A stretch of DNA of 64,000 bases from Macrostomum hystrix (taxonomy: Eukaryota; Animalia; Platyhelminthes). Every line of letters begins with the position of its first letter. Position 1 is the first letter of the stretch. A program made the translations under genes and the position numbers. Under the pieces are notes generated by a model. It saw only the letters and a program-made list of their open reading frames with translations, was not told the DNA's origin and did no database searches. Positions 3,001 to 23,721 of the stretch are shown here, piece after piece. The stretch is taken from NCBI GenBank assembly GCA_950097015.1, contig CATNEN010000003.1:15624001-15688000 (forward strand), in the 5' to 3' direction.

Positions 3001-5904
3001 GAATGATCGCTTTTCGGCTCTGAACAGCACAAACTGAAGCAGCGCTTTCCTGATGCACTGATGTTCCCTGCTGCAGAAAACTGGAAAGTCGTCAAGGAGT
3101 AAAGCTTTTTTCGTGTACACTTTTTTAAGGAAGTCAAGAAGTGGTGGCACGAACTCATCTGTGAGCTGATCTTCCACATTGTAATCGATGCCACCAGAGT
3201 TTATGGTTCTCAATTTATTGTCATTTATAATTTCTAAAGTCATACGGAAAAGTTTCTTCGCTTCCTCCTTTAACTGATAATTTATGCCCTTAGAATCACT
3301 GTCAGTTATTAAGATATCAAGCGCCTCATTTACTCTTTTATCAATCGCATCTTCCATCTCTCGCTTATTTTTGGCATCGTTTTCTGCATTGGTCAGTTTT
3401 TCTTTATCAGACATAAATGCCTCACTTTGAAGCTTTGAGCAGAGCTCCAATTCTCTTAGAAACAGGCTCCAATTCATGCAAGTAATCCTTGCTCTCGCAG
3501 TCTTCATGAATTCTTTGTAATTTTTGTCATTGTTCTTTGAAAGCAAGAGGCAGCATGACCGAGTATGGTCGTCTGTAATTGTCTTCCTCAGCTCATCGAA
3601 ATTAGCAATTCCTTTTTTTCTTATTTTCTCATTTTTTCGTACCTCATTGAGACGATGGCATTCTCCAAACAGGAGCACTGGGCGAGTTGAGTTTTCCAAC
3701 TCTTTAACAAGGCCATTGAATTTATCAGTTTCTAGTTCATCGACGACTTTAGGGATCAGCAATTTGTTCCAGAATTCGTCAAAGTCGTTGAGAACATCCT
3801 CAGATGCCACCAGCAGGCATTCTTTGCCGTCCAGAGCTCTCTCAATGGCAGTCTGGAACAGCACTGTGGTCTTTCCTGTGCCTGGATATCCGCTGATCAG
3901 CAGGCACTGCTCAGAATTGCTCAGGACTTCCTTCTGTTCCTGCGAGAAGAACACGTGGCCTTCGATGTTTTGGGTGTTCCGTGCGATGTGAAATAGCTGA
4001 ACTTCTTTGAGCACTGGCTGGTGCTGTGTGAGCCGCTGTTTAATGTAGGACAGATCAGGGCTGACATCCTCTATGGGAGCAGTGCGGTCCTTTAAAATGA
4101 GTTCGTCACCTTCCCATGGATACTGAATGCCATGGGGTCTGTGCTGAGCAGTCAGCCAAGTGAATGATCGCTTTTCGGCTCTGAACAGCACAAACTGAAG
4201 CAGCGCTTCCCTGATGCACTGATGTTCCCTGCTGCAGAAAACTGGAAAGTCGTCAAGGAGTAAAGCTTTTTTCGTGTACACTTTTTTAAGGAAGTTAAGA
4301 AGTGGTCGCACGAACTCATCTGTGAGCTGATCTACCACATTGTATGCGAAGTCACCAGAGTTTATGGTTCTCAATTCATTGCCCCTTTCTATAATTTTTG
4401 AAATCCTTTGGCCAAGTTCCTCAGTCGCTGTTCGCGCCGTTCTTACTCTTTCGTGAGATGTTTCATCGTTAGTACAAACTCGATATTTTTGATAGTCAGT
4501 GGCTTCCTTCAATTCTATTAGAAACGTGCTCCAATTCATGCAAGTAATCCTTGCTCTCGCAGTCTCCATGAATTTTTTGTCATTTTTCTTTGAAAGCAAG
4601 AGGCAGCGTGACCGAGTATGGTCGTCTGTAATTGTCTTCCTCAGCTCATCGAAATTATCAATTTCTTCACTTTCAATTTTCTCATTTTTTCGTACCTCAT
4701 TGAGACGATGGCATTCTCCAAACAGGAGCACTGGGCGAGTTGAGTTTTCCAACTCTTTAACAATACTATCGAATTTATCAATTTCTAATTCATCGACGAC
4801 TATAGGGATCAGCAAAGTGTTCCAGAATGCGTCAAAGTCGTTGAGAACATCCTCAGATGCCACCAGCAGGCATTCTTTGCCGCCCAGAGCTCTCTCAATG
4901 GCAGTCTGGAACAGCACTGTGGTCTTTCCTGTGCCTGGATATCCGCTGATCAGCAGGCACTGCTCAGAACTGCTCAGGACTTTCTTCTGTTCCTGCGAGA
5001 AGAACACGTGGCCCTTGAAGTCTTTCAGGCTTTTCTTATCTCTGAGTCCCAAAATCTTCTTTGTCCACAGCTCCTGCCTCCAGAGCAGGTCGTTGAGGAA
5101 CTCGATGTGCTTGGCGTTTGAGTAGTGGTGCTCAGGACGGGAAAACACCAGCAGCTTGACCAGATCGATAAATTTTTGCCCAGAAGGACTCAAAAGGCCA
5201 GGTTTAGCATCGTTGGAGAGCTGAAAGAAGTTATTCAAGTGGCTGGTTCCTTCTTCTGAACCTTTAAACTGTCCGTCTTCTGGTATTGGGACAAACCTAA
5301 GCTGAAACTCATCTTCATTGTTTGACTTATTGTATTTAGCCATGATTTTGTGAAACTTCAAGTTTTCTCGTTCGCCTTCTGTGATATTCAAGTGATTGAA
5401 TATTTTTTTATCTATCCAATCAAAAGTTGCCTTGAATTGTTCAGAAGCATCTGCCTTTGAATTTCCCGCCTTGCACTCAATCAGCAGGATTCCTTCGCTG
5501 TACAGGCACACAAAGTCGCAGTTTTTCCCTTCTGGTCTCAATGTTTCATCCATTTGGGATGTTGTTGTTGTCTTTGTTGTTTTATCCCTATGGGAATAAA
5601 CCTGGGCATCAACTTTGTGCAATGCGATTCCAAACGATTCGATTGACTGCAGGTGCTTAAACACCTCCAGCTCCAAACGGTCCCCGAGCCGTTGATCATT
5701 TTCATCCTTACTAGCAGAGTCTTCTCCGTAAGCTTTGTACTCAGGAATGAATGTGGGTGGCACCATCAGCATGCAAGGCTTCGGCTCCTGACTGTCTGCT
5801 TGCTGCCGCTGCGAAGCCTTTTGACTCCACCGCTTCCTGCACTGCTCAATGTGTTCTTCGACCTCCTCCTTGCCGGCATCGCTGCCTCCGCTGTTCTCGG
5901 CCAT
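1..5904 (-). CDS. Copy A of the NERD nuclease-SF1 helicase-USP-like gene, with a tandemly duplicated P-loop domain; 3' end runs off the window
   Basis: Reverse complement is near-identical to ~13410-18287. ATG at 5904-5902 (MAENSGGS...) is in the same frame as the codons at position 1 (..GCEPNE). The ORF track lists no stop-terminated ORF in this frame, so it appears open for >1960 codons. Walker A GYPGTGKT occurs twice (~4930 and ~3880). Confidence 0.85.
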   Translation of the reverse strand, partial: MAENSGGSDAGKEEVEEHIEQCRKRWSQKASQRQQADSQEPKPCMLMVPPTFIPEYKAYGEDSASKDENDQRLGDRLELEVFKHLQSIESFGIALHKVDAQVYSHRDKTTKTTTTSQMDETLRPEGKNCDFVCLYSEGILLIECKAGNSKADASEQFKATFDWIDKKIFNHLNITEGERENLKFHKIMAKYNKSNNEDEFQLRFVPIPEDGQFKGSEEGTSHLNNFFQLSNDAKPGLLSPSGQKFIDLVKLLVFSRPEHHYSNAKHIEFLNDLLWRQELWTKKILGLRDKKSLKDFKGHVFFSQEQKKVLSSSEQCLLISGYPGTGKTTVLFQTAIERALGGKECLLVASEDVLNDFDAFWNTLLIPIVVDELEIDKFDSIVKELENSTRPVLLFGECHRLNEVRKNEKIESEEIDNFDELRKTITDDHTRSRCLLLSKKNDKKFMETARARITCMNWSTFLIELKEATDYQKYRVCTNDETSHERVRTARTATEELGQRISKIIERGNELRTINSGDFAYNVVDQLTDEFVRPLLNFLKKVYTKKALLLDDFPVFCSREHQCIREALLQFVLFRAEKRSFTWLTAQHRPHGIQYPWEGDELILKDRTAPIEDVSPDLSYIKQRLTQHQPVLKEVQLFHIARNTQNIEGHVFFSQEQKEVLSNSEQCLLISGYPGTGKTTVLFQTAIERALDGKECLLVASEDVLNDFDEFWNKLLIPKVVDELETDKFNGLVKELENSTRPVLLFGECHRLNEVRKNEKIRKKGIANFDELRKTITDDHTRSCCLLLSKNNDKNYKEFMKTARARITCMNWSLFLRELELCSKLQSEAFMSDKEKLTNAENDAKNKREMEDAIDKRVNEALDILITDSDSKGINYQLKEEAKKLFRMTLEIINDNKLRTINSGGIDYNVEDQLTDEFVPPLLDFLKKVYTKKALLLDDFPVFCSREHQCIRKALLQFVLFRAEKRSFTWLTAQHRPHGIQYSWEGDELILKDRTAPIEDVSPDLSYIKQRLTQHQPVLKEDQLFHIARNTQNIADYWQQGIQAPSTLKVQVAHQYPGYQVQEIKFHNITDLLLQLNHHLSRSILRYLSLNDVVLLTSNSVYSRLKELKEPICLKFEDMRIEVRKDGYQVEKDKNNAQQLGEKTPNSEEMKVAKIPQILFQKFSEGQVVESRALRVVRVRDAVGCEYPVVIYLHGNFSQYPNQLGFTENFEYFEKRFAEGANCDCESRYGGYEEATAGLDLAMSWAQHANALMACSRARVKLYVCAHHLSPFWHDRRFCALKQDVGDRAHDGVDCVNSVVQALHWMRLMEPTCLPGSLDSLLCELLDSMQSMGSSGGDQKMLQGPVTALLQHVQSKSRQFALAVERGRQNRLLQQLLDSQPPSSVAAQASSLETTKSSARPANLDDQIFTVNLRPVRTTFQELQKLQKKCLGPSFQNARKVDVGSAGAVSVVRFVRTPSQVASRTLTELCKDEQLGEPLMAVTSRTESRKELIDVILKVEDQWQRLFYNESKKFVIEGTNNFQTSVELVIFAKLEEPEPHRAESSDTTGEQTTQCHAENFQQQLLKLLTGNKVQFTNRLKTLLALLKSILNQHQNQNQNQHQNQNQSQNQNQHQNQHQKFLEVVALLQNFSCCCCERNCEVEWTQQQGHQQQPAIKSLRSEFFSNGPDIINKTWLREHIFDRHLTEDKHMRDELQGGSKCCQKRSCEVQKYPSFTVVRFVEDSGCHDIEQTLNSLLNLQQQPAQQGDNQQQPAQQGDNQQQPAQQGDHQQQQPAQQGDSQQQPAQQGDNQQQPAQQGDSQQQPAQQGDSQQQPAQQGDSQQQPAQRWDEQLKISLLALLSRRTRALDKDDETSPLSKEFGIAYNCPSERLPEKEKGHSRSLNCQAQSWSLLGYIDRFETAYDGKVKLDWKDWEYIELLVCDNKKEQPTSEGQQSKLLSHLHDSVELLAKVWPHYWQNSEKNNGCEPNE
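431..690 (-). repeat. Coding 30-bp minisatellite (QQQPAQQGD[S/N/H]), 8 full units plus a partial, inside copy A
   Basis: tgagctggttgctgctgactgtcaccttgc repeated 9 times. Confidence 0.95.
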
Positions 5905-6244: not shown

Positions 6245-6800
6245 ATGATTTCTAGAGATGATCGCAGTAGAGTGTTGTGGACTGGGGCGGACGTCACTAG
6301 GATGGATGTGAAGCTAACCGGAATCGAGCTGTATTTGGATGTCATTGAGCAAAAGACCGCACTAAAAGCTGATTATCTCAAGGCAACAGAGATGGACATT
6401 GATGTTGCATACGGCCTACGTGTGTCGAGATGAACGAAACGAAACTAGAACAAACATCTGCATTAAAGATTGATCATGCAGCAATCCAAGGTATATTATT
6501 ATTTACATGAGAAACCCGAATACTTTTATACATTACATGCATGGAAACGTGAAACATGGAAACATGGTCCATTCAGCATGAAATCAGTGATAATCTTTAC
6601 CCTGCACTGCCACAAAATGGAGATTTCAGTCAGAACAAGATTAGCAAATTTTACAGTGAGTTGGTCGACTTGGCTGTGAAAGAGAACAATGGAATTGCTA
6701 TCACAGCTCTGCAATATGGAACTCTTTATCCGATGTTTGGCACCGATGTGTCTGCCAGACAAATGCCTACTGATAACAGCACTGTGAATATCGTGAATAT
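6245..6800 (+). pseudogene. Decayed C-terminal half of a Polinton/adintovirus-like double-jelly-roll major capsid protein
   Basis: Frameshifted pieces read ..VKLTGIELYLDVIEQ..DIDVAY.. / ..SNPRYIIIYMR.. / ..NLYPALPQNGDFSQNKISKFYSEL..YGTLYPMFGTDVSARQ..NSTVNIV. These match the remembered DJR capsid pattern PR(Y)II..; YP....F..N..S+.Y; Y.TLYP+F.FDVS.Q. Recognised by eye only. Confidence 0.65.
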
Positions 6801-7325
6801 CGTTAACGTCATCCTTATGCTCCTCAACAATGAATTGATTGATGGAATCTATAAAACCTCTCAGATGGTGATTCTGGCTGCAGTTGCATTAAACATTTTG
6901 TCTACAAATATATTATTATAGAAGTGTTAAAAAGCAGCTGAAAGTCAGAGAAAATGGTTTAAAGTAAGTCAGGATTTACTTACGAAGATACGATGCAAAT
7001 TCGAGTGTCCACTAAAAACAAATTTCTCCTATATCTCTTTCCCTCAGCAGTCTGCCTATTTCTTTATTTGGAGCGTGCAAGACAAACCCCCTCCCTACTG
7101 ATCTCTCTTCTCCCAACTTTAGCTTACCAAAAGTGAACTGAATTTTCTTGAATCATTCTGCTCTCTCAACCCCAGCTCTTTCAGCAGAACTCCAAGTTCT
7201 CTACTTGGAGCATGCAATACAAAGCCCACTCCAACCCCAACTTTGTCTTACCAAAAATAACAGCTTTAACTAGCTTCCCAGCGATCGATTCCCTCCACCC
7301 ACTTGAAGTCCCCATATTGTCTAGT
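6565..7325. repeat. Left arm of a ~760 bp near-perfect inverted repeat (partner 10970-11735)
   Basis: Reciprocal ORF pairs 6556..6921(+)/11375..11734(-) and 7212..7406(+)/10871..11083(-) are almost identical. Confidence 0.95.
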
Positions 7326-7899
7326 CTCCCAATTTCTTTCTTTCTTTCTTTTTTTAATGTGGCATTCCAAAGACACTTAAGTAATATTCAAAAACAGACG
7401 CTTTAGTGTTCATGTAAACTAACTATAAGACTTAGAAATCTGAAGGGAATTCAAGAGAGCTCTAGGATAAAACTAGGCTAAAAGGATCAACAGCAGAGAG
7501 GGCAAACAACTGAAAGGAGAAAGATTAGACAAAGATTCGCCCCGAGTTCACCTATTCATTTCAGAGCAAACCCGGTCCGGCATGGCCGCAGCTGTGCTGA
7601 CGTGGAGCCGCCTGATATCGACCCGCAGCTGTGCTGACGTGGAACTGCCGGAATCGACCCGGCTCGGCCTGTCCAGACCCGCAGCTGCCTGCATCGACCC
7701 AGCCCTGCCTGAAATCGGAGCAGCCCGGACCCGATCTGGAACGAGATCTGGAGGAGGCCGGGACCGCACAAGAAGACTGGATCGATGAAGGGGAAGGGGA
7801 TAATGAACAGTAGGAAAGAGGTCTCGGTAGAAGCGGAAACGCTTCCTAACTCAACTAAGGCGTTTTTAGGACTTTTCCCCACCCCCGTAGAAAAGGGGT

Positions 7900-10700: not shown

Positions 10701-10894
10701 AATATTATTTAGTCTTTCAGCAATCGCTTCCTTTCTTTCACCCCCCGAAAAAAATATTTAAACTTTACTGGATGAATTGTTGATCATGTTAAGCTTCACC
10801 TTCCTCTCAAACGCAAAGATGTACAGGTCCACGGGTGTTGTGACAGCCCTCTCAATGTTAGTCACGATATTCAATTATGAACTGAATGAAATGA

Positions 10895-11075
10895 GTCATC
10901 TCTGCGATCAACATTCAAGTGGTCTTTTCCAGAAGAGAAGACCCGCTGGGATAAAGAAATGCTGAGGAGACTACACAATATGGGGACTTCAAGTGGGTGG
11001 AGGGAATCGATCGCTGGGAAGCTAGTTAAAGCTGTTATTTTTGGTAAGACAAAGTTGGGGTTGGGGTGGGCTTTG
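10895..11075 (+). pseudogene. Possible viral-type phospholipase A2 C-terminal fragment (inverted copy at ~7225-7340)
   Basis: ..EKTRWDKEMLRRLHNMGTSSGWRESIAGKLVKAVIFGKTKLGLG resembles the AD+.L...RE...A.+V...+..K.KLG+G tail of Polinton/adintovirus PLA2 proteins. The catalytic HD motif is not clearly preserved. Confidence 0.35.
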
Positions 11076-11735
11076 TATTGCATGCTCCAAGTAGAGAACT
11101 TGGAGTTCTGCTGAAAGAGCTGGGGTTGAGAGAGCAGAATGATTCAAGAAAATTCAGTTCACTTTTGGTAAGCTAAAGTTGGGAGAAGAGAGATCAGTAG
11201 GGAGGGGGTTTGTCTTGCACGCTCCAAATAAAGAAATAGGCAGACTGCTGAGGGAAAGAGATATAGGAGAAATTTGTTTTTAGTGGACACTCGAATTTGC
11301 ATCGTATCTTCGTAAGTAAATCCTGACTTACTTTAAACCATTTTCTCTGACTTTCAGCTGCTTTTTAACACTTCTTATATATTTGTAGACAAAATGTTTA
11401 ATGCAACTGCAGCCAGAATCACCATCTGAGAGGTTTTATAGATTCCATCAATCAATTCATTGTTGAGGAGCATAAGGATGACGTTAACGATATTCACGAT
11501 ATTCACAGGGCTGTTATCAGTAGGCATTTGTCTGGCAGACACATCGGTGCCAAACATCGGATAAAGAGTTCCATATTGCAGAGCTGTGATAGCAATTCCA
11601 TTGTTCTCTTTCACAGCCAAGTCGACCAACTCACTGTAAAATTTGCTAATCTTGTTCTGACTGAAATCTCCATTTTGTGGCAGTGCAGGGTAAAGATTAT
11701 CACTGATTTCATGCTGAATGGCTGAATGGACCATT
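10970..11735. repeat. Right arm of the ~760 bp inverted repeat
   Basis: Reverse complement of 6565-7325 with a few small indels. Confidence 0.95.
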
Positions 11736-11743
11736 CTTTATCC

Positions 11744-11921
11744 AGGGATAAAGAATGGTAATCCCTGGGTTAGGGGAAGAATGGGAATCCCTGGGGTAGG
11801 GGAAGAATGGGAATCCTTGGGGTAGGGGAAGAATGGTAATCCTTGGGGTAGGGGAAGAATGGGAATCCTTGGGGTAGGGGAAGAATGGGAATCCTTGGGG
11901 TAGGGGAAGAATGGGAATCCC
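11744..11921 (+). repeat. 26-bp G-rich minisatellite, ~7 copies
   Basis: ggggtaggggaagaatgggaatcctt. Confidence 0.9.
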
Positions 11922-13014
11922 TACTGCTCACGACGAAGCTGCTCATGATCCTCTTCGTTTTTTAAAAATATTTTTTATGCGTTGTGTTTTATTGAGTGAC
12001 GACCAGAAGTCAATTGTTCAGGGAATACTTTATTTCAATATTCCTAACCTGTCGATAATTACTCGTATTTACATATAATAGTTGACTTCGCAATGAACAA
12101 CTTCTATTGTCCGTTCCAGATATTTAATCGGGATTAGTAAGACAAAATTAAAGATAAACAAAATGTAAAAAGGTGTGCGAATCTTTCTGAAGAGATGAAT
12201 AAAGTTCCCCAGTAGGGTGGCTCTATTAGCAACACAAGCATTGGCACAGTTCTTTACTTCTGCTGACCTTCCCGCCTGTTGCCTTCGCTCTGCACCGTAA
12301 AAACTCGCTGCGGGAAAATTTTGTGCGGGAAAAACTGCGGGGAAAGCTCGGCGAAAAAAAATTCCAGCGGGAAACTCTCGCGCTCCCCAGTAAGCCCAAA
12401 CTGGTGACAATCATGCTTTGTTGTTACCTTCCGCCCGTCAGCATGGAAGACCTTGGAGTCACACAGCATTTTTGTTTTGGGCTGCGTTCCTTCTTGCAGC
12501 CGAGGCTCAGGCCTGGCCTGAACAAACGACCGCTGGTTAGGACAGGGAGCTCTGCATCTAGAAACTGGAGAGATTCCAACCCCCATTTTCCGGATCCCCA
12601 TGGGCTGACTGGCTGTCCGAAATTCACATGGGCAGATAGGAAATTCTGATGCATTACTTAGAGAAAAGCACTGGGCAACAGACTTTCAAAATGTCTGTTT
12701 CATTAGAAAGCAGATCGAATTCTGTACACTTCAGCTGAAGCTCGTGCGTCTACCTGTTTTAGCTACTGAGCTGTGCTTAAATAATGCTTAGGGAAAAATG
12801 TCACTCAGCAGTGCACGACCTTGGAAAGTTGAGATGAGGAAACATTTTATGCATTGGCCAATTTTACCGACATTTTGCATACTTGCATCAACGCCCATCG
12901 AGTAAAGAAAAAAGTTTTCAGCATTTCAACTTTGCGATTTTCGGTCCTAAAGAAGACAATTTTTGTTGTCATCTATGAGAGAGGAGAGAGAGAAAAACAT
13001 AGTGGATTTCAATG

Positions 13015-13290
13015 GGGACATTGAGTTGAGTTTAAACGCTCATTGAGTTTAAAACCCAGAAGAAAGTGTGTGGCCTTGTTATTTTTTTACAGAACTTAGC
13101 AGGTATTTTTCTACTCTAGGCAATTTATAAAATCAAAGGTTCGGATAACCAAAGTGACTGGTGTCATTCTTGGAAGTCCGTTGTTTGCAGAAAGCCACAT
13201 TTTTCATGTCACATGTGCTGACGCTAAATATTAACCCGAATCCCGGTTGCAGCGCTTGATCCCGACCAGCCGTTGGTAGCAACGCTCCCA
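13015..13290 (+). promoter_or_regulatory. Upstream/promoter segment shared (inverted) with copy A (5926-6185)
   Basis: gacattgagttgagtttaaacgctcattgagtttaaaacccagaagaaagtgtgtggcc.. and gtcacatgtgctgacgctaaat.. are reverse complements of 6060-6185 and 5930-6000. Promoter role is inferred only from position. Confidence 0.55.
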
Positions 13291-13325
13291 GCGGCTCCCA
13301 GACGGCCGAGAGCAGCAGCTCCCAG

Positions 13326-16300
13326 ATGGCCGAGAACAGCGGAGGCTCCCAAATAGCCGAGAACAGCGGAGGATCCCAGATGGCCAAGAACAGCAGCTCC
13401 CAGATGGCCGAGAACAGCGGAGGCTCCCAGAGGAGAGCCGGCATGGAGGAGGTCCGAGAACACATTCAGCAGTGGATGCAGTGGAGTCAAAAGGCTTCGC
13501 AGCGGCAGCAAGCAGACAGTCAGGAGCCGAAGCCTTGCATGCTGATGGTGCCACCCACATTCATTCCTGAGTACAAAGCTTACGGAGAAGACTCTGCTAG
13601 TAAGGATGAAAATGATCAACGGCTCGGGGACCGTTTGGAGCTGGAGGTGTTTAAGCACCTGCAGTCAATCGAATCGTTTGGAATCGCATTGCACAAAGTT
13701 GATGCCCAGGTTTATTCCCATAGGGATAAAACAACAAAGACAACAACAACATTCCAAATGGATGAAACATTGAGACCAGAAGGGAAAAACTGCGACTTTG
13801 TGTGCCTGTACAGCGAAGGAATTCTGCTGATTGAGTGCAAGGCGGGAAATTCAAAGGCAGATGCTTCTGAACAATTCAAGGCAACTTTTGATTGGATAGA
13901 TAAAAAAATATTCAATCACTTGAATATCACAGAAGGCGAACGAGAAAACTTGAAGTTTCACAAAATCATGGCTAAATACAATAAGTCAAACAATGAAGAT
14001 GAGTTTCAGCTTAGGTTTGTCCCAATACCAGAAGACGGACAGTTTAAAGGTTCAGAAGAAGGAACCAGCCACTTGAATAACTTCTTTCAGCTCTCCAACG
14101 ATGCTAAACCTGGCCTTTTGAGTCCTTCTGGGCAAAAATTTATCGATCTGGTCAAGCTGCTGGTGTTTTCCCGTCCTGAGCACCACTACTCAAACGCCAA
14201 GCACATCGAGTTCCTCAACGACAAGCTCTGGAGGCAGGAGCTGTGGACAAGGAAGATTTTGGGACTCAGAGATAAGGAAAGCCCGAAAGACTTCAAGGGC
14301 CACGTGTTCTTCTCGCAGGAACAGAAGGAAGTCCTGAGCAGTTCTGAGCAGTGCCTGCTGATCAGCGGATATTTAGGCACAGGAAAGACCACAGTGCTGT
14401 TCCAGACTGCCATTGAGAGAGCTCTGGGCGGCAAAGAATGCCTGCTGGTGGCATCTGAGGATGTTCTCAACGATTTTGAGGCATTCTGGAACACTTTGCT
14501 GATCCCTATAGTCGTCGATGAATTAGAAATTGATAAATTCGATAGTATTGTTAAAGAGTTGGAAAACTCAACTCGCCCAGTGCTCCTGTTTGGAGAATGC
14601 GATCGGCTCAATGAGGTACGAAATAATGAGATAATTGAAAGTGAAGAAATTGATAATTTCGATGAGCTGAGGAAGACAATTACAGACGACCATACTCGGT
14701 CATGCTACCTCTTGCTTTCAAAGAACAATGACAAATATTACAAGGAATTCATGGAGACTGCGAGAGCAAGGATTACTTGCATGAATTGGAGCCTGTTTCT
14801 AAGAGAATTGGAGCTCTGTTCAAAGCTTCAAAGTGAGGCATTTATGTCTGATAAAGAAAAACTGACCAATGCAGAAAACGATGCCAAAAATAAGCGAGAG
14901 ATGGACGATGCGATTGATAAAAGAGAAAAGCTCGCAGAAAAGTTAGTGCCGCTATTTCTTGACTTCCTAAAACAAAAGTACAAGGAAGTACCAGGTTTAC
15001 TCCTTGACGACTTTCCAGTTTTCTGCAGCAGGGAACATCAGTGCATCAGGGAAGCGCTGCTTCAGTTTGTGCTGTTCAGAGCCAAAGAGCAATCATTCAC
15101 TTGGCTGACTGCTCAGCACAGACCCCATGGCATTCAGTATCCATGGGAAGGTGACGAACTCATTTTAAAGGACCGCAATGCTCCCATAGAGGATGTCAGC
15201 CCTGATCTGTCCGACATTAAACAGCGGCTCACACAGCACCAGCCAGACCAGCAAAGTGGAACAGAAAATGCAGTGCTCAAAGAAGTTCAGCTACTTCACA
15301 TCGCACGGAACACCCAAAACATCGCCGACTATTGGCAACAGGGAATTCAAGCTTCCAGCAGGCTAAAAGTGCAAGTGGCTCATCAGTATCCCGGCTATCA
15401 AGTTCAGGAAATCAAGTTTCACAACATCACTGACCTCTTGCTCCAATTGAATCACTATCTGAGCAGATCAATTCTCAGATACTTGAGTTTGGATGATGTT
15501 GTGCTGATTACAAGCAACTCGGTGTACTCACGCTTAAAAGTACTAAAAGAACCGATCTGTTTAAAGTTTGAGAAGATGAGAATTGAAGTTCGAAAGGACG
15601 CTATACGTGAAATACATAAATACAAAAAAAAGAGAGAGAAACATATAACTGACGTTCCTCAAATTTTATTTCAGAAGTTTTCAAAAAAAGGCCAGGTTGT
15701 CGAATCACGGTCTGTTAGGGTTGTTAGTGTCAGCGATGCCGTCGGCTGTGAATATCCGGTAGTGATTTACCTACACGGCAATTTCTCCCAGTATCCCAAT
15801 CAGCTGGGATTTACAGAGAATTTCGAATACATCGAGAAGCGCTTCGCAGAAGGCGCCAATTGCGACTGCGAGAGCCGCTACGGAGGCTACGAAGAGGCCA
15901 CAGCTGGGCTGGACTTGGCCATGAGCTGGGCACAGCACGCAAACGCTCTCATGGCCTGCTCCCGAGCTCGAGTCAAGCTCTACGTGTGCGCCCACCACCT
16001 GTCACCGTTCTGGCACGACAGGCGCTTCTGCGCTCTCAAGCAGGACGTGGGAGACAGAGCTCATGACGGAGTCGACTGCGTCAATTCGGTTGTGCAGGCG
16101 CTGCACTGGATGAGGCTGATGGAGCCCACCTGCCTGCCTGGGAGACTGGACAGCCTGCTCTGCGAACTGCTCGACTCGATGCAGTCGATGGGGTCAAGTG
16201 GCGGAGACCAGAAAATGCTTCAAGGACCGGTCACTGCCCTGCTGCAGCATGTGCAAAGCAAGAGCAGGCAGTTTGCTTTGGCTGTTGAGAGAGGCAGACA

Positions 16301-19300
16301 GAACCGACTGCTGCAGCAGCTTCTGGATAGTCAGCCGCCATCATCAGTTGCTGCTCAAGCGAGCAGTCTAGAAACCACCAAGTCCTCGGCTCGGCCAGAG
16401 AATCTAGACGGCCAGATCTTCACGGTGAACCTCCGTCCAGTGCGGACAACGTTCCAGGAGCTTCAGAAACTGCAGAAGAAGTGTTTAGGGCCGAGTTGCC
16501 AAAATGCGCGCAAAGTTGACGTCGGCAGTGCAGGAGCCGTCTCCGTCGTTCGCTTCGTGAGAACTCCAAGTCAAGTGGCGAGCAGAACTCTGACTGAGCT
16601 GTGCAAGGATGAGCAGCTCGGAGAGCCACTGATGGCCGTGACTTCTCGAACTGAGAGTAGAAAAGAATTAATTGATGTCATTCTGAAAGTGGAAGATCAG
16701 TGGCAGCGACTTTTTTACAATGAGTCTAAGAAGTTTGTGATAGAAGGGACCAATCATTTTCAAACTTCGGTAGAACTCGTCATTTTTGCCAAGCTTGAAG
16801 AGATTCACAACGCAGAATCTTCAGACACGACAGGAGAGCAAACGACGCAATGTCATGCAGAAAACTTTCAGCAGCAACTTCTAAAACTTTTGACAGGCAA
16901 TAAAGTGCAATTTACTAACCGTCTGAAGACTTTACTGGCACTCTTAAAGTCCATTTTGAATAAGCATCAGAATCAGAATCAGAATAAGCATCAGAAGTTC
17001 TTAGAAGTTGTCGCACTACTACAAAATCGGATGGAGTCCGGAGTGAATCAGTTTTCTTATTTTTCCTGCTGCTGCTGCGAACGAAATTGTGAAGTGGAGT
17101 GGACCCAACGGCAAGGTCACCAACAGCAGCCTGCGATTAAGTCTTTAAGATCCGAGTTTTTTTCGAACGGACCTGACATCATCAACAAAACTTGGCTTAG
17201 AGAACACATCTTCGATAGGCATTTAACTGAGGATAAGCATATGCGTGATGAGCTGCAGGGTGGTTCAAAATGCTGTCAAAAACGTTCCTGTGAAGTTCAG
17301 AAGTATCCAAGCTTCACTGTGGTTCGCTTCGTTGAAGATTCTGGATGCCACGACATAGAGAAAACTCTCAACAGTCTTCTCAACCTTCAGCAGCAACCAG
17401 CTCAGCAAGGTGACAGTCAGCAGCAACCAGCTCAGCAAGGTGACAGTCAGCAGCAACCAGCTCAGCAAGGTGACAGTCAGCAGCAACCAGCTCAGCAAGG
17501 TGACAGTCAGCAGCAACCAGCTCAGCAAGGTGATAATCAGCAGCAACCAGCTCAGCAAGGTGACAGTCAGCAGCAACCAGCTCAGCAAGGTGACAATCAA
17601 CAGCAACCAGCTCAACAAGGTGACAATCAACAGCAACCAGCTCAGCAAGGTGATCATCAGCAGCAGCAACCAGCTCAGCAAGGTGACAGTCAGCAGCAAC
17701 CAGCTCAGCAAGGTGATAATCAGCAGCAACCAGCTCAGCAAGGTGACAGTCAGCAGCAACCAGCTCAGCAAGGTGACAGTCAGCAGCAACCAGCTCAGCA
17801 AGGTGACAATCAGCAGCAACCAGCTCAGCAAGGTGACAGTCAGCAGCAACCAGCTCAAAGGTGGGACGAGCAGCTCAAAATTCCTTTGCTGGCCCTGTTG
17901 TCAAGACGGACTCGAGCTTTGGGCAAAGACGATGAGACGAGTCCACTAAGTAAAGAATTCGGGATTGCCTATAATTGCCCCAGCGAAAGATTGCCTGAAA
18001 AAGAGAAAGGGCATTCTCGTTCATTGAATTGTCAGGCGCAAAGTTGGAGTTTGCTTGGGTATATTGATCGATTTGAAACGGCATATGATGGCAAAGTAAA
18101 GTTGGATTGGAAAGATTGGGAATATATTGAACTATTAGTTTTCGATAACAAAAAAGAACAGCCAACTTCTGAGGGTCAGCAAAGTAAACTTCTCTCACAC
18201 CTCCATGACTCAGTTGAACATCTTGCCAAGGTATGGCCACACTACTGGCAAAATTCAGAAAAAAATAATGGGTGTGAACCAAATGAAAGAGACAAAAGAT
18301 TTAATGAGTTTCTGGAAACAATACTTAAAGAAAATGGTAAATCTGAATGGTTGGAACAGCCTTTAGAGCCACTATCAGAATTCGTCTGCGTGCACACCTG
18401 CACCTGCTCAGTGTACCAGCTGCCGGTGCTGACAGTCCCAATTCGACCAGTGCGCACCGTTCTTAGTGAGCTCAAGACCTCAGTGCACTCAGTGACTGCT
18501 CACGGATCTGGCCCTAGTGGAGTATCTGTTCTTTACTTCAGCCGTGCTCAACCAGAAAACCAGTCTAGCGTGAGTCTGTGCTCAGATCCACAGCTGGGAG
18601 AACCAGTTCTCACTTTGGGTCACTGTTCAAACTCAAGTACCTATGAGGTGCACGCCAGACTAAACGGAAGTTGGTTCCGCATCAAACCTGTCAAAGAACC
18701 CGACCCTTTTGAGCAAGTCTTCACGGCTGCAGCAGACTCAAAGCTGCTGATCGATCTGGTGGTGTTTCAGAAGGCTCAGAAACACGAAACAGGACAGTCA
18801 AGCTCGCTGATTCAGGACTTGAAAAATTTACAGAACAATCAGCAGCAGCAACTAGCTCAGAAAGGTCTGCAACAACAAATCGAGATTGATCCGATGAAAA
18901 AACTGCTGGATTCTCTGATGATGGAACTGATGAAAATCCTGAAAGACGCAACTGAGCCTTGTGAAAGAGGCTCTCAATTGTGTCACGACAAGGACCTTAA
19001 CGGAATGCTGGATTTTCTAAACTTTATTTTAGAGAAGTCAATGCAACCAGCAGTCACCACATTCCACGACAAGTGCCTCGAACACCATAGTCAAGATAAT
19101 TGTAAGTGTATGCCTTTTCTCCAACTGACACCGGGCAACATAGTTAAAAACAAATGTAACAAATGTAGCAATAATGCTACTGAATGCAGTAATGAGAACT
19201 GCACTGAAAAACGTGAGTTTAGCGTTCTCTACCGCGATAGAGTACGTAATCGTAATGGAAAAAATCAGAAGCCTGTACAAAACAACAACGATAATTTTGG

Positions 19301-20975
19301 TTCACCAGAAATCGTCGTGTCCCACAAGGGTCGAAACTCAACGGACGGTCAGTACGCGACCTTCGTGCGGCATTCAGGCATCTGGTACCGCATTTTATAT
19401 GGTGAAGTCAAACAAGAAGATCCGTACACAAATGCCGAGGGATTCGATATTGTTATCGAAGTTTTTAAACACAGTTCGACTGAAGCAACAAAGGAAACAA
19501 TCGATCAACTCGCCAAAAGGCTGACGCCTCTTGCTGAGTATCTCGGATGCTCCGGTTATGTCAACGCTATCGTGCAGATGCTCTACTGGATGAGAGTAAA
19601 GTCCGATTCATTCCTCGCACAATCGGAGGTGTCAAAGAAGCTGCTCAAGCTGCTGGATGCCATGGATGAGTCGAAGACCAAGCTCGAATCGACTCTCGAA
19701 GTACAGCAGGTGTTGCGCAGCAGGCAGGACCAAGGCCAGATCCCGCTAGACACTGAGCTGACAGCTGTTGAGTGCGCATTGTATCTGATCTCGCAGATGC
19801 CTTCAGAACTGGCTCAGAGATTCCTGATCATCGAGTGCGACTTGAGGGAGCTCCTCGAGTCGAGGAAGAAGCCCAGACGGTCCGATATCAACCTGGCGAG
19901 CCTTCAGGTGGACAGCCAGCAGCTGAGGGGGCCCGTGTCCATCGTGTGCCTGAACCGGCAGTCATCGGGAGAAAAGTGCCTCGCGCCCGTCAGTCTGGGC
20001 TCCCACCCGGTTATGGGGAGTGCATTCATCGCCGAGTCACGGAGCCGAGTCTCTGGACGTCACGTGACCAGCGTGTTGCTTGAAGACGGACTCTGGCACA
20101 GGATTGATGGGGCCCGGATGATTGCGGACAAGGATCCAGCCAGAAGCTCAGAGTTCGACATCCTACTGGTTGCCTATCGCAGACCATGGACCACAGCGGA
20201 TAGTGTAAAGAAATCTTCCGTAGAGACCCTTCGAATCATTCCGGTCTCCCTAATTCACTACTGCATTCTGAGAAACAATGACGACAGAGCTTACACGTCG
20301 GCTAAGGACCACAAGAATGTCGGCTACGCAAACTGCATCGCTCAGATGCTCTACTGGATGCGAGAGAAGGCTGCAGAGCCAAACGACTTTCTCAAAGATG
20401 ATCAACTTGGTTCAGAAGTGCTGCTTCTCTTGAACAGAATGAAACAGTCAGGCCAGGAGTCAGTTTCCAGCCTGCTGTCAGCCGTGAGACAGAAGCAGCC
20501 GGGCCTCTTTCCAGTTGGGCAACAGTGCGACTGCATCGAGTTCCTCCAGGAGCTTCTCAAGCTTGTGAAATTCAATGAGGGTGTTCTCACCAGCTTCGGG
20601 GAAGGTCAATGGTTTGACCGCCGTATCAATGAAAATGAATCTGGCGATTGGTCGACTAATGTCGATAAGCAACAAAGAACTATTAAGAATGGCGAGTTCA
20701 CCATTATCGCCTTCGAGCGAGTTGCAGAGACGGAAAAATTGTTCAACAAGGTCAATCTAGAAGAAGACCAAACTTATGGCCAGCCAGTCATCATCGTGTC
20801 CCACAGGGGCGAATCAATGGAGGAAGGGCACTACGTAGCCTATGTAAAATTCAGCCAAGAATGGTACTGCATCGATGACCAGAAGTCAGGTGCACAAAAG
20901 AAAAATCCTGGCCAAGAATTATATGACATTGTACTGGTTGTGCTGCAGAAAAAAGTGACACCACAGGACACTTAA
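13326..20975 (+). CDS. Copy B: intronless 2549-aa NERD/PD-(D/E)XK-like nuclease + Schlafen/UvrD-like SF1 helicase + multiple degenerate USP (C19)-like domains
   Basis: Nuclease: GDRLELEVFKHL..CDFVCLYSEGILLIECK. Helicase: Walker A ISGYLGTGKT (~14367), Walker B LLLDDF (~15000), ARNTQNI, SDAVGCEYPVVI, ACSRARVKLYV. USP Cys-box-like: DCVNSVVQALHW, GYVNAIVQMLYW, GYANCIAQMLYW. Also QQCDCIEFL and His-box IIVSHRGESMEEGHYVAYVK..WYCIDD. Confidence 0.88.
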   Translation: MAENSGGSQIAENSGGSQMAKNSSSQMAENSGGSQRRAGMEEVREHIQQWMQWSQKASQRQQADSQEPKPCMLMVPPTFIPEYKAYGEDSASKDENDQRLGDRLELEVFKHLQSIESFGIALHKVDAQVYSHRDKTTKTTTTFQMDETLRPEGKNCDFVCLYSEGILLIECKAGNSKADASEQFKATFDWIDKKIFNHLNITEGERENLKFHKIMAKYNKSNNEDEFQLRFVPIPEDGQFKGSEEGTSHLNNFFQLSNDAKPGLLSPSGQKFIDLVKLLVFSRPEHHYSNAKHIEFLNDKLWRQELWTRKILGLRDKESPKDFKGHVFFSQEQKEVLSSSEQCLLISGYLGTGKTTVLFQTAIERALGGKECLLVASEDVLNDFEAFWNTLLIPIVVDELEIDKFDSIVKELENSTRPVLLFGECDRLNEVRNNEIIESEEIDNFDELRKTITDDHTRSCYLLLSKNNDKYYKEFMETARARITCMNWSLFLRELELCSKLQSEAFMSDKEKLTNAENDAKNKREMDDAIDKREKLAEKLVPLFLDFLKQKYKEVPGLLLDDFPVFCSREHQCIREALLQFVLFRAKEQSFTWLTAQHRPHGIQYPWEGDELILKDRNAPIEDVSPDLSDIKQRLTQHQPDQQSGTENAVLKEVQLLHIARNTQNIADYWQQGIQASSRLKVQVAHQYPGYQVQEIKFHNITDLLLQLNHYLSRSILRYLSLDDVVLITSNSVYSRLKVLKEPICLKFEKMRIEVRKDAIREIHKYKKKREKHITDVPQILFQKFSKKGQVVESRSVRVVSVSDAVGCEYPVVIYLHGNFSQYPNQLGFTENFEYIEKRFAEGANCDCESRYGGYEEATAGLDLAMSWAQHANALMACSRARVKLYVCAHHLSPFWHDRRFCALKQDVGDRAHDGVDCVNSVVQALHWMRLMEPTCLPGRLDSLLCELLDSMQSMGSSGGDQKMLQGPVTALLQHVQSKSRQFALAVERGRQNRLLQQLLDSQPPSSVAAQASSLETTKSSARPENLDGQIFTVNLRPVRTTFQELQKLQKKCLGPSCQNARKVDVGSAGAVSVVRFVRTPSQVASRTLTELCKDEQLGEPLMAVTSRTESRKELIDVILKVEDQWQRLFYNESKKFVIEGTNHFQTSVELVIFAKLEEIHNAESSDTTGEQTTQCHAENFQQQLLKLLTGNKVQFTNRLKTLLALLKSILNKHQNQNQNKHQKFLEVVALLQNRMESGVNQFSYFSCCCCERNCEVEWTQRQGHQQQPAIKSLRSEFFSNGPDIINKTWLREHIFDRHLTEDKHMRDELQGGSKCCQKRSCEVQKYPSFTVVRFVEDSGCHDIEKTLNSLLNLQQQPAQQGDSQQQPAQQGDSQQQPAQQGDSQQQPAQQGDSQQQPAQQGDNQQQPAQQGDSQQQPAQQGDNQQQPAQQGDNQQQPAQQGDHQQQQPAQQGDSQQQPAQQGDNQQQPAQQGDSQQQPAQQGDSQQQPAQQGDNQQQPAQQGDSQQQPAQRWDEQLKIPLLALLSRRTRALGKDDETSPLSKEFGIAYNCPSERLPEKEKGHSRSLNCQAQSWSLLGYIDRFETAYDGKVKLDWKDWEYIELLVFDNKKEQPTSEGQQSKLLSHLHDSVEHLAKVWPHYWQNSEKNNGCEPNERDKRFNEFLETILKENGKSEWLEQPLEPLSEFVCVHTCTCSVYQLPVLTVPIRPVRTVLSELKTSVHSVTAHGSGPSGVSVLYFSRAQPENQSSVSLCSDPQLGEPVLTLGHCSNSSTYEVHARLNGSWFRIKPVKEPDPFEQVFTAAADSKLLIDLVVFQKAQKHETGQSSSLIQDLKNLQNNQQQQLAQKGLQQQIEIDPMKKLLDSLMMELMKILKDATEPCERGSQLCHDKDLNGMLDFLNFILEKSMQPAVTTFHDKCLEHHSQDNCKCMPFLQLTPGNIVKNKCNKCSNNATECSNENCTEKREFSVLYRDRVRNRNGKNQKPVQNNNDNFGSPEIVVSHKGRNSTDGQYATFVRHSGIWYRILYGEVKQEDPYTNAEGFDIVIEVFKHSSTEATKETIDQLAKRLTPLAEYLGCSGYVNAIVQMLYWMRVKSDSFLAQSEVSKKLLKLLDAMDESKTKLESTLEVQQVLRSRQDQGQIPLDTELTAVECALYLISQMPSELAQRFLIIECDLRELLESRKKPRRSDINLASLQVDSQQLRGPVSIVCLNRQSSGEKCLAPVSLGSHPVMGSAFIAESRSRVSGRHVTSVLLEDGLWHRIDGARMIADKDPARSSEFDILLVAYRRPWTTADSVKKSSVETLRIIPVSLIHYCILRNNDDRAYTSAKDHKNVGYANCIAQMLYWMREKAAEPNDFLKDDQLGSEVLLLLNRMKQSGQESVSSLLSAVRQKQPGLFPVGQQCDCIEFLQELLKLVKFNEGVLTSFGEGQWFDRRINENESGDWSTNVDKQQRTIKNGEFTIIAFERVAETEKLFNKVNLEEDQTYGQPVIIVSHRGESMEEGHYVAYVKFSQEWYCIDDQKSGAQKKNPGQELYDIVLVVLQKKVTPQDT
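17388..17858 (+). repeat. Coding 30-bp minisatellite (QQQPAQQGD[S/N/H]), 15 full units plus a partial, inside copy B
   Basis: cagcagcaaccagctcagcaaggtgacagt tandem. Confidence 0.95.
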
Positions 20976-22799: not shown

Positions 22800-23715
22800 G
22801 GATATCTTAATAACTGACAGTGATTCTATGGGCATAAATTATCAGTTGAAGGAGGAAGCGAAGAAACTTTTTCATACGACTTTAGAAATTATAGTTGACA
22901 ATAAATTGAGAAGCACAAACTCTGGTGACTTCGCATACAATGTGGTAGATCAGCTCGCAGACGAGTTCGTGCCGCTATTTTTGGACTTCCTAAAACAAAA
23001 GTACCAGGAAGAAGTTTTACTCCTTGACGAATTTCCAGTTTTCTGCAGCAGGGAACATCAGTGCATCAGGGAAGCGCTGCTTCAGTTTGTGCTGTTCAGA
23101 GCCAAAGAGCAATCATTCACTTGGCTGACTGCTCAGCACAGACCCCATGGCATTCAGTATCCATGGGAAGGTGACGAACTCATTTTAAAGGACCGCAATG
23201 CTCCCATAGAGGATGTCAGCCCTGATCTGTCCTACATTAAACAGCGGCTCACACAGCACCAGCCAGACCAGCAAAGTGGAACAGAAAATGCAGTGTTCAA
23301 AGAAGATCAGCTATTTCACATCGCACGGAACACCCAAAACATCGCCGACTATTGGCAACAAGGGATTCAAGCTCCCAGCACGCTAAAAGTGCAAGTGGCT
23401 CATCAGTATCCCGGCTATGAAGTTCAGGAAATCAAGTTTCACAACATCACTGACCTCTTGCTCCAATTGAATCACCATCTGAGCAGATCAATTCTCAGAT
23501 ACTTGAGTTTGGATGATGTTGTGCTGATTACAAGCAACTCGGTGTACTCACGCTTAAAAGTACTAAAATAACCGATCTGTTTGAAGTTTGAGGACATGAG
23601 AATTGAAGTTCAAAAAGACGGGTTTCAAGTAGAGAAAGACAAAAAAATGCTCAGCAGCAAGCTGAGAAGACCCCGAATTCAGAGGAGATGAAAGTTGCTA
23701 AAATTCCTCAAATTA
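22800..23715 (+). pseudogene. Copy C: truncated helicase-core fragment of the same gene family
   Basis: ORF 22828..23571 aligns with copy B ~14940-15550 and copy A 3320-2440. GAA>TAA stop at 23569, a downstream frameshift, no nuclease domain or Walker A, and it runs straight into the 16-bp array. Confidence 0.85.
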
Positions 23716-23721
23716 CTACTA

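Follow-up and report, generated by a model that had tools for sequence, protein, structure and literature searches.

A gene of the flatworm Macrostomum hystrix encodes, in one unbroken reading frame, a protein of 2549 residues in which, as read from the sequence, a probable NERD-like nuclease and a probable SF1 helicase-type motor are followed by about 1650 residues of USP-like units, every one of which lacks the canonical catalytic cysteine in this copy. A combination of nuclease, helicase-type motor and USP array is met nowhere else in the searches run. We regard the three-part architecture itself as likely to be right. As a whole explanation, that of a nuclease-motor from a young gene cluster carrying a dead-USP reader of ubiquitin, we give it slightly less than an even chance, and a role in defence or genetic conflict somewhat less again. 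Nuclease activity, helicase class, ATPase competence, coupling of the modules and biological role are inferred.

Transcript structure and expression of gene A

The gene, called copy A or gene A here, lies in a window of 64,000 nucleotides, the whole stretch of DNA that was analysed. Its transcript features are as follows.

13326..20975, + strand: copy A coding sequence, 2549 aa, single uninterrupted exon, ATG to TAA
11294..11311, + strand: gene A, last 18 nt of the non-coding 5′ leader exon, exact match to the contig-end 18-mer
11312..13252, + strand: 5′ UTR intron of gene A, 1941 nt, GT..AG
13289..13431, + strand: 24/27-nt tandem repeat encoding the N-terminal MAENSGGSQ repeats, copy number varying between paralogs
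17387..17857, + strand: 30-nt tandem repeat, 15.6 copies, encoding (QQQPAQQGDS)n, length differing among copies

The giant open reading frame is exactly as a first-pass annotation of this DNA had claimed, and by our own arithmetic the probability that 2549 random codons are free of stops is about e^-122. An in-frame TGA at 13257-13259 excludes an upstream start codon for copy A. The same annotation had called the gene intronless, which is true of the coding sequence but not of the 5′ UTR with its 1.9-kb intron.

Gene A is expressed, with regular splicing and trans-splicing. Four runs, taken to be RNA because of their splice junctions (the kind of library is not on record), gave contigs whose cover over the 5′ half of the gene is near zero at 11800-13200 and unbroken from about 13253; the reading frame is tiled from 13253 onward, and the 1.4 kb upstream of that position is left untiled. 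Contigs of runs X1 and X4 carry 18 loose letters before 13253 that match 11294..11311 exactly, and a donor (cttc/gtaagt) follows directly after 11311, with the acceptor (ttgcag/) at 13252/13253. The loose contig end of run X2 is an 18-mer with 31 genomic occurrences, many of them in arrays about 11.6 kb apart, and the acceptor is common to the cis leader exon and the trans-spliced spliced leader. Some contigs match without a mismatch on stretches where copy A is only 78-90% like its paralogs, and these are therefore copy-specific pieces. Expression, on which the first-pass annotation had made its proposal depend, is thus established by contigs that include such pieces and by splice junctions. 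The MAENSGGSQ repeat region is shorter by 26 aa in copy B, and one run shows a 78-nt skip in it.

Nuclease candidate and P-loop motor

The N-terminal third of the protein contains the two putative enzymatic modules and, within the second, a variable block.

13758..13955, + strand: core of the NERD-like PD-(D/E)xK nuclease candidate, aa 145-210, with D157, E168 and K170; all profile matches sub-threshold
14328..16025, + strand: P-loop NTPase, probable SF1 (UvrD/SLFN-group-3-like) helicase module, aa 335-900, with Walker A and sub-threshold profiles
14670..15041, + strand: hypervariable cassette-like block in the motor domain, aa 449-572, coiled-coil-rich, 65-80% nt identity to copy B

The N-terminal domain is probably a NERD-like PD-(D/E)xK nuclease. 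An IECK stands at aa 169 with D157 upstream of it (CDFVCLYSEGILLIECK), and the resulting D157-x10-E168-C-K170 motif is shared unchanged by copies A, B and C. The nuclease motif proposed earlier therefore holds as a D-x10-E-x-K core, but its exact spaced pattern is not found letter for letter; likewise, the assignment to the NERD type has the conserved motif in its favour, but all profile matches stay sub-threshold. Pfam NERD (PF08378) reaches 12.5-14.3 bits against a cut-off of 22.1 (E 0.06-0.22), and in each of the three copies the match falls on profile positions 37-91; PADLOC HEC-02B matches below threshold at 1.7e-4 to 2.8e-4, and Atlas leads to NERD and Mrr_cat_2 with a score of 0.88, which is under the reliability line of the tool. 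A PDB sequence search with the N-terminal part gave Walker-A-level noise or nothing, as did NCBIfam, PHROGs and tblastn against plasmids, and a whole-genome profile scan returned no other NERD genes. An AlphaFold model of aa 60-920, made from four near-identical alignment rows, has a mean pLDDT of 32 and so confirms neither the nuclease nor the motor fold; in this low-confidence model the D and ExK parts lie, as weak evidence, on adjacent strands followed by a helix.

The motor is probably of the UvrD/SLFN-like SF1 helicase type, and its Walker A (GYLGTGKTT, aa 348-356), which many P-loop profiles align, is solid. A full set of SF1 motifs had been announced for it. Walker A stands, but motifs II and IV-VI are assigned by eye and the profiles remain below their cut-offs. 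The candidates for motif II are LLFGECDRL at aa 419 (GECD at aa 422) or LLLDDFPVF at aa 558 (DDF at aa 561), and those for motifs IV-VI are ARNTQNI at aa 660, GCEYPVV at aa 807 and SRARVKLY at aa 879; no motor motif differs between copies A, B and C. Since both motif II candidates are non-canonical, ATP hydrolysis may be weak or switch-like. SLFN-g3_helicase (PF09848) is the best helicase-specific Pfam match (22.1 bits against a cut-off of 24), and UvrD-helicase (PF00580) gives 9-15 bits against 23. Helicase profile matches take in Walker A and extend no further than the first ~100 residues; none covers a second RecA-like domain. The SF1 class proposed earlier thus has sub-threshold SLFN-g3 and UvrD matches behind it, but a STAND-type NTPase profile scores equally well (27.8 bits against 34). 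Atlas scores to NERD+UvrD clusters are 0.96-0.97.

Among defence profiles, PADLOC Nhi gives 19-22 bits per P-loop copy, with weak AbiO and GajB matches as well. The protein was not assigned to Nhi (PADLOC PDLC02372): copy B reaches its E-value of 1.7e-10 only because two P-loop copies contribute about 20 bits each, copy A has no match, and the profile is unspecific, firing in 11 of 14 control genomes.

The USP-like array and its predicted ubiquitin docking

The C-terminal array comprises the following units.

16011..16922, + strand: USP-like unit 1 (U1), complete, aa 896-1199, Asp at the catalytic Cys position, profile E=7.7e-8
16908..17153, + strand: partial USP-like unit (thumb part), aa 1195-1276, second-round profile E=2.7e-8
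18330..18884, + strand: USP-like half unit 2 (U2; fingers and palm, without Cys-box), aa 1669-1853, no catalytic His
18903..19529, + strand: USP-like half unit 3 (U3), aa 1860-2068, with a Cys-rich finger-like stretch and GQY as His-box
19497..20291, + strand: USP-like unit 4 (U4), complete, aa 2058-2322, Gly at the Cys position, GRH in the His-box
20256..20972, + strand: USP-like unit 5 (U5), aa 2311-2549, Gly at the Cys position, Pfam UCH match

The C-terminal ~1650 aa are, on solid sequence grounds, an array of USP-fold units. Pfam UCH (PF00443) matches U5 over aa 2320-2549 with 37.4 bits, passing its cut-off of 23.9 (E=2.8e-9), and for the other units, matches to U5 or to the unit profile have E-values of 5e-11 to 8e-8. 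This profile was built from complete units only, and the weaker units were recovered with it. U4 aligns to U5 at E=5.2e-11; U3 reaches U5 alone at 4.9e-9, the unit profile at 1.7e-10 and Pfam UCH at 0.005; U2 goes from 0.005 in round 1 to 1.8e-40 in round 2. The evidence for the partial unit is weaker, because the second-round profile already included related units. The unit profile matches TssM and USP46 in the PDB, and the His-box of U5 (GHYVAYV...CIDDQ) aligns to those of USP14 and USP5. An AlphaFold model of U5 has a pLDDT of 55 (palm 73-80); the top Foldseek matches of this model are all USPs, with TM-scores of only 0.22-0.33 over 70-110 columns. Cys-box-like segments occur at three places in copy A (aa 919, 2079 and 2335), and five units, U1-U5, carry the His-box half. 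The array that had been described as three Cys-box-like and about five His-box-like segments is one on which Pfam UCH, the unit profile and the fold matches agree.

It is equally solid that no unit in copy A retains the canonical catalytic Cys: where USP46 has its catalytic Cys, the aligned residue is Asp in U1, Gly in U4 and Gly in U5, in both A and B, which upholds the earlier label of pseudo-deubiquitinase for copy A. The canonical His is absent from U1-U4, and U5, which retains a QQ-CDC-IEFL box, GHY and IDD, is the sole unit with His and Asp. A canonical Cys occurs only in the last unit of copy C, together with a full canonical triad. U5 is a recombinant of two ancestral units.

What, then, might an array of dead units do? 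A complex prediction of U5 with the worm's own ubiquitin scored 0.83, against 0.00 for the best of three controls, with contact agreement between runs of at least 89% and a partner pLDDT of at least 89. In the predicted pose the ubiquitin tail lies in the cleft of this last unit, with ubiquitin residues 42-49 and 68-76 against the Cys-box and His-box of U5. The mark that the score passes was also passed by 51 of 78 solved complexes and by 2 of 108 mismatched pairs, and on eukaryotes by 39 of 65 solved pairs without a like older complex and by 2 of 126 unrelated pairs. U5 is the single unit tested, and its pass may reflect memory of solved USP-ubiquitin structures. The ubiquitin sensing suggested earlier fits this prediction, and we lean, by a small measure, towards ubiquitin reading by the array.

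The family cluster and possible roles of the protein

Besides gene A, the window contains the following members or parts of the family.

1..5904, − strand: paralog B, 3094 aa, head-to-head with A and running past the window start
6569..7329, − strand: promoter, leader exon and intron start of paralog B, mirror of those of gene A, 100% identical to 10966-11721
22801..23645, + strand: family fragment matching A aa ~458-710 by sequence, with one TAA break

The family consists of three full copies (A, B and C) and two fragments in a single cluster of about 55 kb, and a genome-wide search found no dispersed or diverged members elsewhere; this copy count agrees with the recent expansion proposed in the first-pass annotation. 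The leader 18-mer of paralog B lies at 6984-7001 on the minus strand. In paralog B the segment that corresponds to A aa 321-666 is duplicated in tandem, and the junction of this duplication is the contig back-joint 15324 -> 14298 seen in all four runs. The reading frame of copy C is broken. Each copy is a mosaic, with near-identical blocks (97-100%) and old ones; the flanks of the hypervariable block in the motor are 97-100% identical to copy B at the nucleotide level. In the old blocks, dS is 0.5-3 and dN/dS 0.2-0.6, which indicates a sequence long maintained as protein. The overall dN/dS of A versus B, about 0.8-1.3, also fits relaxed constraint. Units were gained and lost through unequal exchange; in the exchange from which U5 arose, it was precisely the half with the Cys that was lost. 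The cluster is, as we read it, young and lineage-restricted, and its mosaic evolution is local and under coding constraint.

Word-index homology searches gave no hits with the full protein and its region 60-1010, with the N-terminal module taken alone (E up to 10), or with the intact USP unit of copy C at E up to 0.1, and exhaustive phmmer with aa 60-1010 against 1.84 billion representative proteins gave 0 hits. Copies A and B are themselves absent from the protein collection by exact look-up, so that missing near relatives mean little. Literature searches did not find the architecture described, and the earlier remark that the fusion is an unrecognised one stands on these two kinds of search.

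We propose that the approximately six dead USP units would read ubiquitin, its chains or a ubiquitin-like tag multivalently, and that the array would thereby recruit the nuclease-helicase to nucleic acid-protein targets marked with ubiquitin, or license it there; the setting that we think most likely is one of genetic conflict (antiviral or anti-transposon). Nuclease-helicase fusions are a recurrent design against foreign nucleic acid, in bacteria and, as Schlafens, in animals. A USP-fold chain without catalysis, predicted to hold the ubiquitin tail, could be the aiming part of such an effector, and if the array reads ubiquitin marks, ubiquitin signalling would be tied directly to nucleic-acid cleavage in one polypeptide. 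The intact triad of copy C and the Cys-less recombinant unit of A and B would then be a natural series from deubiquitinase to binding module. The fullest version, an innate-immune or genome-defence effector whose dead-USP array reads poly-ubiquitin, a ubiquitin-like protein or a viral mimic and licenses destruction of foreign nucleic acid, with cassette exchange diversifying specificity, seems to us unlikely as it stands. Macrostomum flatworms are amenable to RNAi.

Two other readings of the same modules concern how they work. The P-loop might be the signalling NTPase of a STAND/NLR-like switch rather than a translocating helicase, with the nuclease as effector, an oligomerising NTPase and the USP-like array in the usual sensor place of LRR, TPR or WD40 repeats. 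The effector-NTPase-repeat order fits such a switch, LLLDDF resembles hhhhDD, the Walker B of STAND proteins, and among Pfam families nSTAND_NTPase5 (PF25199; 25.9-27.8 bits against a cut-off of 34, E=2.6e-6) matches the P-loop best, with nSTAND3 and AAA_16 matching as well. However, every nSTAND match stays under its cut-off (34 and 27.2 bits), and the aligned nSTAND part, which stops at aa 433, falls far short of LLLDDF. Atlas places the protein next to NERD-bearing SF1 helicases rather than STAND proteins, and GCEYPVV and SRARVKLY resemble SF1 motifs V and VI, so that we think a switch of this kind improbable. Nor do we expect the USP units to be still active, with neighbouring cysteines or partners restoring deubiquitinase or UBL-protease activity; the chance of this appears small. 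There are cysteines nearby (GCSGY in U4, DC in U1 and ANC in U5), U5 keeps His, Asp and the QQ-box, copy C has its full triad in the last unit, and activity through non-canonical residues has been claimed for USP39, in which Cys is replaced by Asp, and for USP52 (PMC10919355). Against this, A and B alike have Asp, Gly and Gly in place of the canonical Cys, the exchange forming U5 deleted exactly the Cys-bearing half, and U1-U4 are without canonical His.

The remaining readings differ in what the gene is for. A non-immune genome-maintenance factor, in which the nuclease-helicase is recruited to ubiquitinated chromatin or stalled forks, would make use of the predicted ubiquitin docking and of the probable PD-(D/E)xK nuclease with its motor, and DNA repair offers many cases, FAN1 and ZRANB3 among them, in which a domain that reads ubiquitin is joined to a nuclease or translocase. 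But no ortholog appeared in any search, and conserved repair genes do not typically change in copy number, include a broken copy, show cassette mosaicism or have a dN/dS of about 1 between young copies, as this family does, which makes this role rather unlikely. It is also doubtful, to about the same degree as renewed USP activity, that the genes are young, transcribed but functionless or decaying duplicates whose long reading frames are kept by recency and gene conversion: the A-B dN/dS, the frame break of copy C, two dead fragments and the two non-canonical motif II candidates agree with decay, but two intact reading frames of 2549 and 3094 codons, the constraint in the old blocks, catalytic-type motifs of nuclease and motor identical in all copies, and expression with regular splicing argue against it. 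Even a decaying lineage-specific oddity would document how unequal exchange and gene conversion shape a giant multidomain gene. Least probable by far is a transposon or transposon-derived protein, for instance one from the Helitrons with USP-like domains in this genome, or cargo of a virus-like insertion. Such a Helitron likewise joins a USP-like domain and an SF1-superfamily helicase in one chain, and its His-box aligns faintly to U5 (E=3.2). However, its reading frame consists of DUF6570, Helitron_like_N and PIF1 and is unrelated in sequence, with no significant similarity to protein A (best E 0.03, on an unrelated stretch), protein A has no profile match to Rep, PIF1, transposase or integrase, and all copies lie within the one cluster, whereas the Helitron is presumably dispersed. 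A Helitron origin was therefore rejected, and the mobile origin suggested in the first-pass annotation finds no support.

How does the nuclease-motor with its dead-USP array compare with known systems? Bacterial NERD-SF1 (UvrD-type) fusions, including nuclease-helicases of the PADLOC Nhi and AbiO types, have the same order of a PD-(D/E)xK-type N-terminus followed by an SF1-like motor and the D..ExK core in common with it, and the Atlas neighbours of the gene A protein are of such a type. Protein A, however, is about three times longer, with its ~1650-aa USP-like array, and gene A is eukaryotic, spliced and SL-trans-spliced, has non-canonical motif II candidates, and shows neither a sequence homolog nor a profile at cut-off. 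We know of no bacterial NERD-SF1 member with a USP-like array. NERD-SF1 helicases have been located in prokaryotic defence neighbourhoods (bioRxiv 10.64898/2026.09.30.754977). The group III Schlafens (SLFN5/11/13/14) likewise combine a nuclease with a PF09848-type SF1 helicase in rapidly evolving, clustered paralogs, but they have a Schlafen-core N-terminus and no USP array, whereas the N-terminus of protein A looks NERD-like and the Schlafen core (AlbA_2/Slfn) finds no match in protein A at E up to 10. Group III Schlafens have immune roles. As far as we know, USP domains have not been described in tandem arrays before. PAN2/USP52 and USP39/Sad1 have, as here, a USP fold without the canonical Cys, and the Asp of USP39 is that of U1; each has one USP domain and is an ancient, conserved, single-copy housekeeping gene, in contrast to the approximately six tandem units, other nuclease class, motor and fast-changing lineage-restricted cluster of the present family. 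Dead USP domains serve as scaffolds or binders, and that of PAN2 adjoins a nuclease in one chain (PMC10919355).

Within the family, the fragment at 22801..23645 reads LLLDEFPVF where the full copies have LLLDDFPVF.

Transcription and organization of the gene cluster

The open reading frame under study (copy A) is uninterrupted over 2549 codons, as the first-pass annotation had claimed, and an in-frame TGA at 13257-13259 places its start codon at 13326 or later. Protein and profile searches of the window's own genome found the family, including two paralogs (copies B and C), only at 15.589-15.648 Mb of contig C3. The copies and fragments are as follows.

Window 13326-20975 (+): copy A, open reading frame
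Window 1-5904 and beyond (-): copy B, 3094 aa, intact, head-to-head with copy A
L023:620-9904 (-): copy B, full extent on a piece of the same genome, including the part outside the window
About 27 kb upstream: copy C, split into 733-aa and 2431-aa frames
Window 22801-23645: one of two family fragments
C3:15614686-15615259 (+): chimeric dead family fragment, in which a match to copy A aa 545-641 adjoins a match to USP unit 4 (about aa 2197-2293)

About 72% of the sampled words of the copy A reading frame were found in four runs (among them X1, X2 and X4) of one study, whose run type is not on record, each with about 47 Mb of contigs; these contigs were placed on window 11400-17399. They tile the reading frame from about 13253 onward, leaving 11800-13200 nearly bare, and the boundary lies directly after ttgcag. 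In X1 and X4, the boundary is preceded by 18 loose letters identical to 11294-11311 (+), which are followed in the genome by gtaagt. From these junctions, copy A has a non-coding leader exon joined by splicing across a 1941-nt intron, and the earlier description of the gene as intronless, strictly taken, fails. The same 18 letters recur, mirrored, at 6984-7001 (-). Zero-mismatch contigs cover 15511-15764 and 16932-17102, where similarity to the paralogs is only 78-90%, and thus copy A itself is represented in the contigs: it is expressed.

The loose end in X2 is a different 18-mer, which occurs 31 times in the genome (reversed control, 0), many of its copies lying in arrays with a spacing of about 11.6 kb. 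Its letters resemble the Macrostomum spliced leader, and the 18-mer can be read as the 3′ end of a trans-spliced leader. The regular arrays with this spacing on contigs C15, C17 and C42 (e.g., C17:2765-120870) are probably SL-RNA gene arrays.

In copy B, a segment matching copy A aa 321-666, P-loop included, is duplicated in tandem, giving two P-loop modules; all four runs have contigs with the junction of this duplication, seen as a back-joint (15324 to 14298). The frame of copy C changes at C3:15596791-15596857 (L024:7791-7857) (-), where its two frames overlap; the change may be genuine or may come from misassembly. The downstream family fragment is flanked by two arrays of a 16-nt tandem repeat, at 21453-22209 (47 copies) and 23718-24000 (18 copies).

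The probable N-terminal nuclease and motor region

Copy A has the motifs listed in the first-pass annotation, with IECK at aa 169 (D157 lies ahead of it) and Walker A at aa 348. Copies A, B and C do not differ in the nuclease motif or in any motor motif. Pfam gave only a weak P-loop match on the whole protein; on pieces, NERD matched weakly (E=0.22). The NERD match, with E between 0.06 and 0.22 and sub-threshold, involves profile positions 37-91 each time, and the PADLOC profile HEC-02B matches the same stretch at about 2e-4, also sub-threshold. For the motor, the bit scores were 22 for SLFN-g3_helicase (cut-off 24) and 26-28 for nSTAND_NTPase5 (cut-off 34); Nhi, an unspecific profile, gave about 20 bits per P-loop copy, likewise sub-threshold. 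In the ESM Atlas, aa 1-1010 fall among NERD+UvrD/SLFN-helicase clusters at 0.96-0.97, two of them mostly molluscan; the nuclease part alone gave weak leads only. Elsewhere in the genome, Nhi matches one place only, C25:2811783-2814971 (L029; E=0.02), which contains a 369-aa reading frame and is probably an unrelated P-loop gene.

There are two candidates for motif II: LLFGECDRL, similar to DEAQRL but for the replaced Asp, and LLLDDFPVF, similar to DEFQD but for the replaced Glu. Since either has one canonical acidic residue changed, ATP turnover by the motor may be slow. The dead fragment at 22801-23645 reads DEF at the second site.

The C-terminal array of USP-fold units

The C-terminal half of copy A is an array of USP-fold units (U1-U5). 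With U5 as the sole query, U4 is recovered at 5e-11 and the half unit U3 at 5e-9; a profile restricted to the complete units recovers U1 (8e-8) and the half unit U2 (0.005). Among PDB entries, the unit profile matches the TssM deubiquitinase and USP46, and UCH matches the last unit with 37.4 bits against a curated cut-off of 23.9. Cys-box-like segments lie at aa 919, 2079 and 2335, and His-box-like segments in five units, as had been listed; in U5 this box, aligned to those of USP14 and USP5, retains His and Asp. A moderate AlphaFold model of U5 has a pLDDT of 55 (73-80 in the palm), and all its Foldseek matches are USP catalytic domains, with low TM-scores.

The units belong to the USP fold family but are not canonical enzymes. 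At the column of the USP46 catalytic Cys (GNTCYVNS), U1 has Asp and U4 and U5 have Gly in both A and B. In this tool-made alignment, the term pseudo-deubiquitinase, proposed at first pass, proves right for copy A, with the caveat that activity has been reported for some 'dead' USPs (PMC10919355); residual protease activity of the USP units is possible. The last unit of copy C has Cys at this column and also keeps GHY and IDD. This extra terminal unit, at C3:15589565-15590386 (L024:565-1386) (-), has the complete canonical triad (NLCYANSILQ, GHY, IDD) and is alone in the family in being potentially active as a deubiquitinase. In A and B, U5 is recombinant, its first ~100 aa matching unit 5a of copy C and its last ~140 aa unit 5b, so that unequal exchange took out exactly the Cys-bearing half. 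The terminal unit of copy C looks like the state ancestral to the hybrid, Cys-less U5 that A and B have.

U5 was also modeled in complex with the worm's own ubiquitin (L037:1495-1722), with three controls. The complex scored 0.83 and the best control 0.00; of solved complexes, 51 of 78 come up to the mark of this test, vs 2 of 108 mismatched pairs, and for eukaryotes the figures are 39 of 65 solved pairs without a like older complex vs 2 of 126 unrelated pairs. Contacts agreed by at least 89% between runs, with a partner pLDDT of at least 89. In the model, the Ile44 patch and the tail of ubiquitin (residues 70-76) contact residues 20-24 of the unit, the Cys-box with its Gly, and 188-193 (GHY), and the predicted pose is canonical. 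The tool itself warns that memorized USP-ubiquitin structures could account for such a pass; the model indicates likeness rather than binding.

Evolution of the copies and alternative readings

For both A and B, the promoter, leader exon and intron start lie in inverted repeats of 100% identity, 6569-7329 and 10966-11721, separated by a 3.6-kb spacer (7330-10965) with only short reading frames of at most 126 aa. Such perfect identity suggests that gene conversion is ongoing, though a collapsed assembly is another possibility. The coding sequences are mosaics, switching between blocks of 97-100% identity and others of 49-80%, and the N-terminal and Q-rich tandem repeats differ in length between copies. 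Compared over their whole length, A and B have a dN/dS of about 0.8-1.3 at a dS of 0.03-0.06, and a young duplicate cluster in decay is a possible reading; the old blocks (dS 0.5-3) have a dN/dS of 0.2-0.6, which indicates a sequence long kept as protein.

The protein would act in the manner of the NERD-SF1 nuclease-helicases, which occur in prokaryotic defence neighbourhoods (bioRxiv 10.64898/2026.09.30.754977), and of Schlafen-type animal effectors, but it stays under the curated cut-offs for both families and has no Schlafen core. It is also possible that the P-loop module is a STAND-type switch, or that the protein acts in repair. For dead USP domains, the nearest precedents are PAN2 and USP39 (PMC10919355). 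No homologs were found in word-index searches, one of them with the intact USP unit of copy C, or in a phmmer search of aa 60-1010 against 1.84 billion representative proteins; A and B are themselves absent from the searched collection, and therefore relatives in sister species could still exist. A Helitron origin was rejected, as the copy A family is not dispersed and the genome's USP-bearing Helitron reading frame is unrelated to it in sequence. The latter, at C3:6411111-6416510 (L035:611-6010) (+), is intact, encodes 1799 aa with DUF6570, Helitron_like_N and PIF1, and has a USP-like His-box near its N-terminus.
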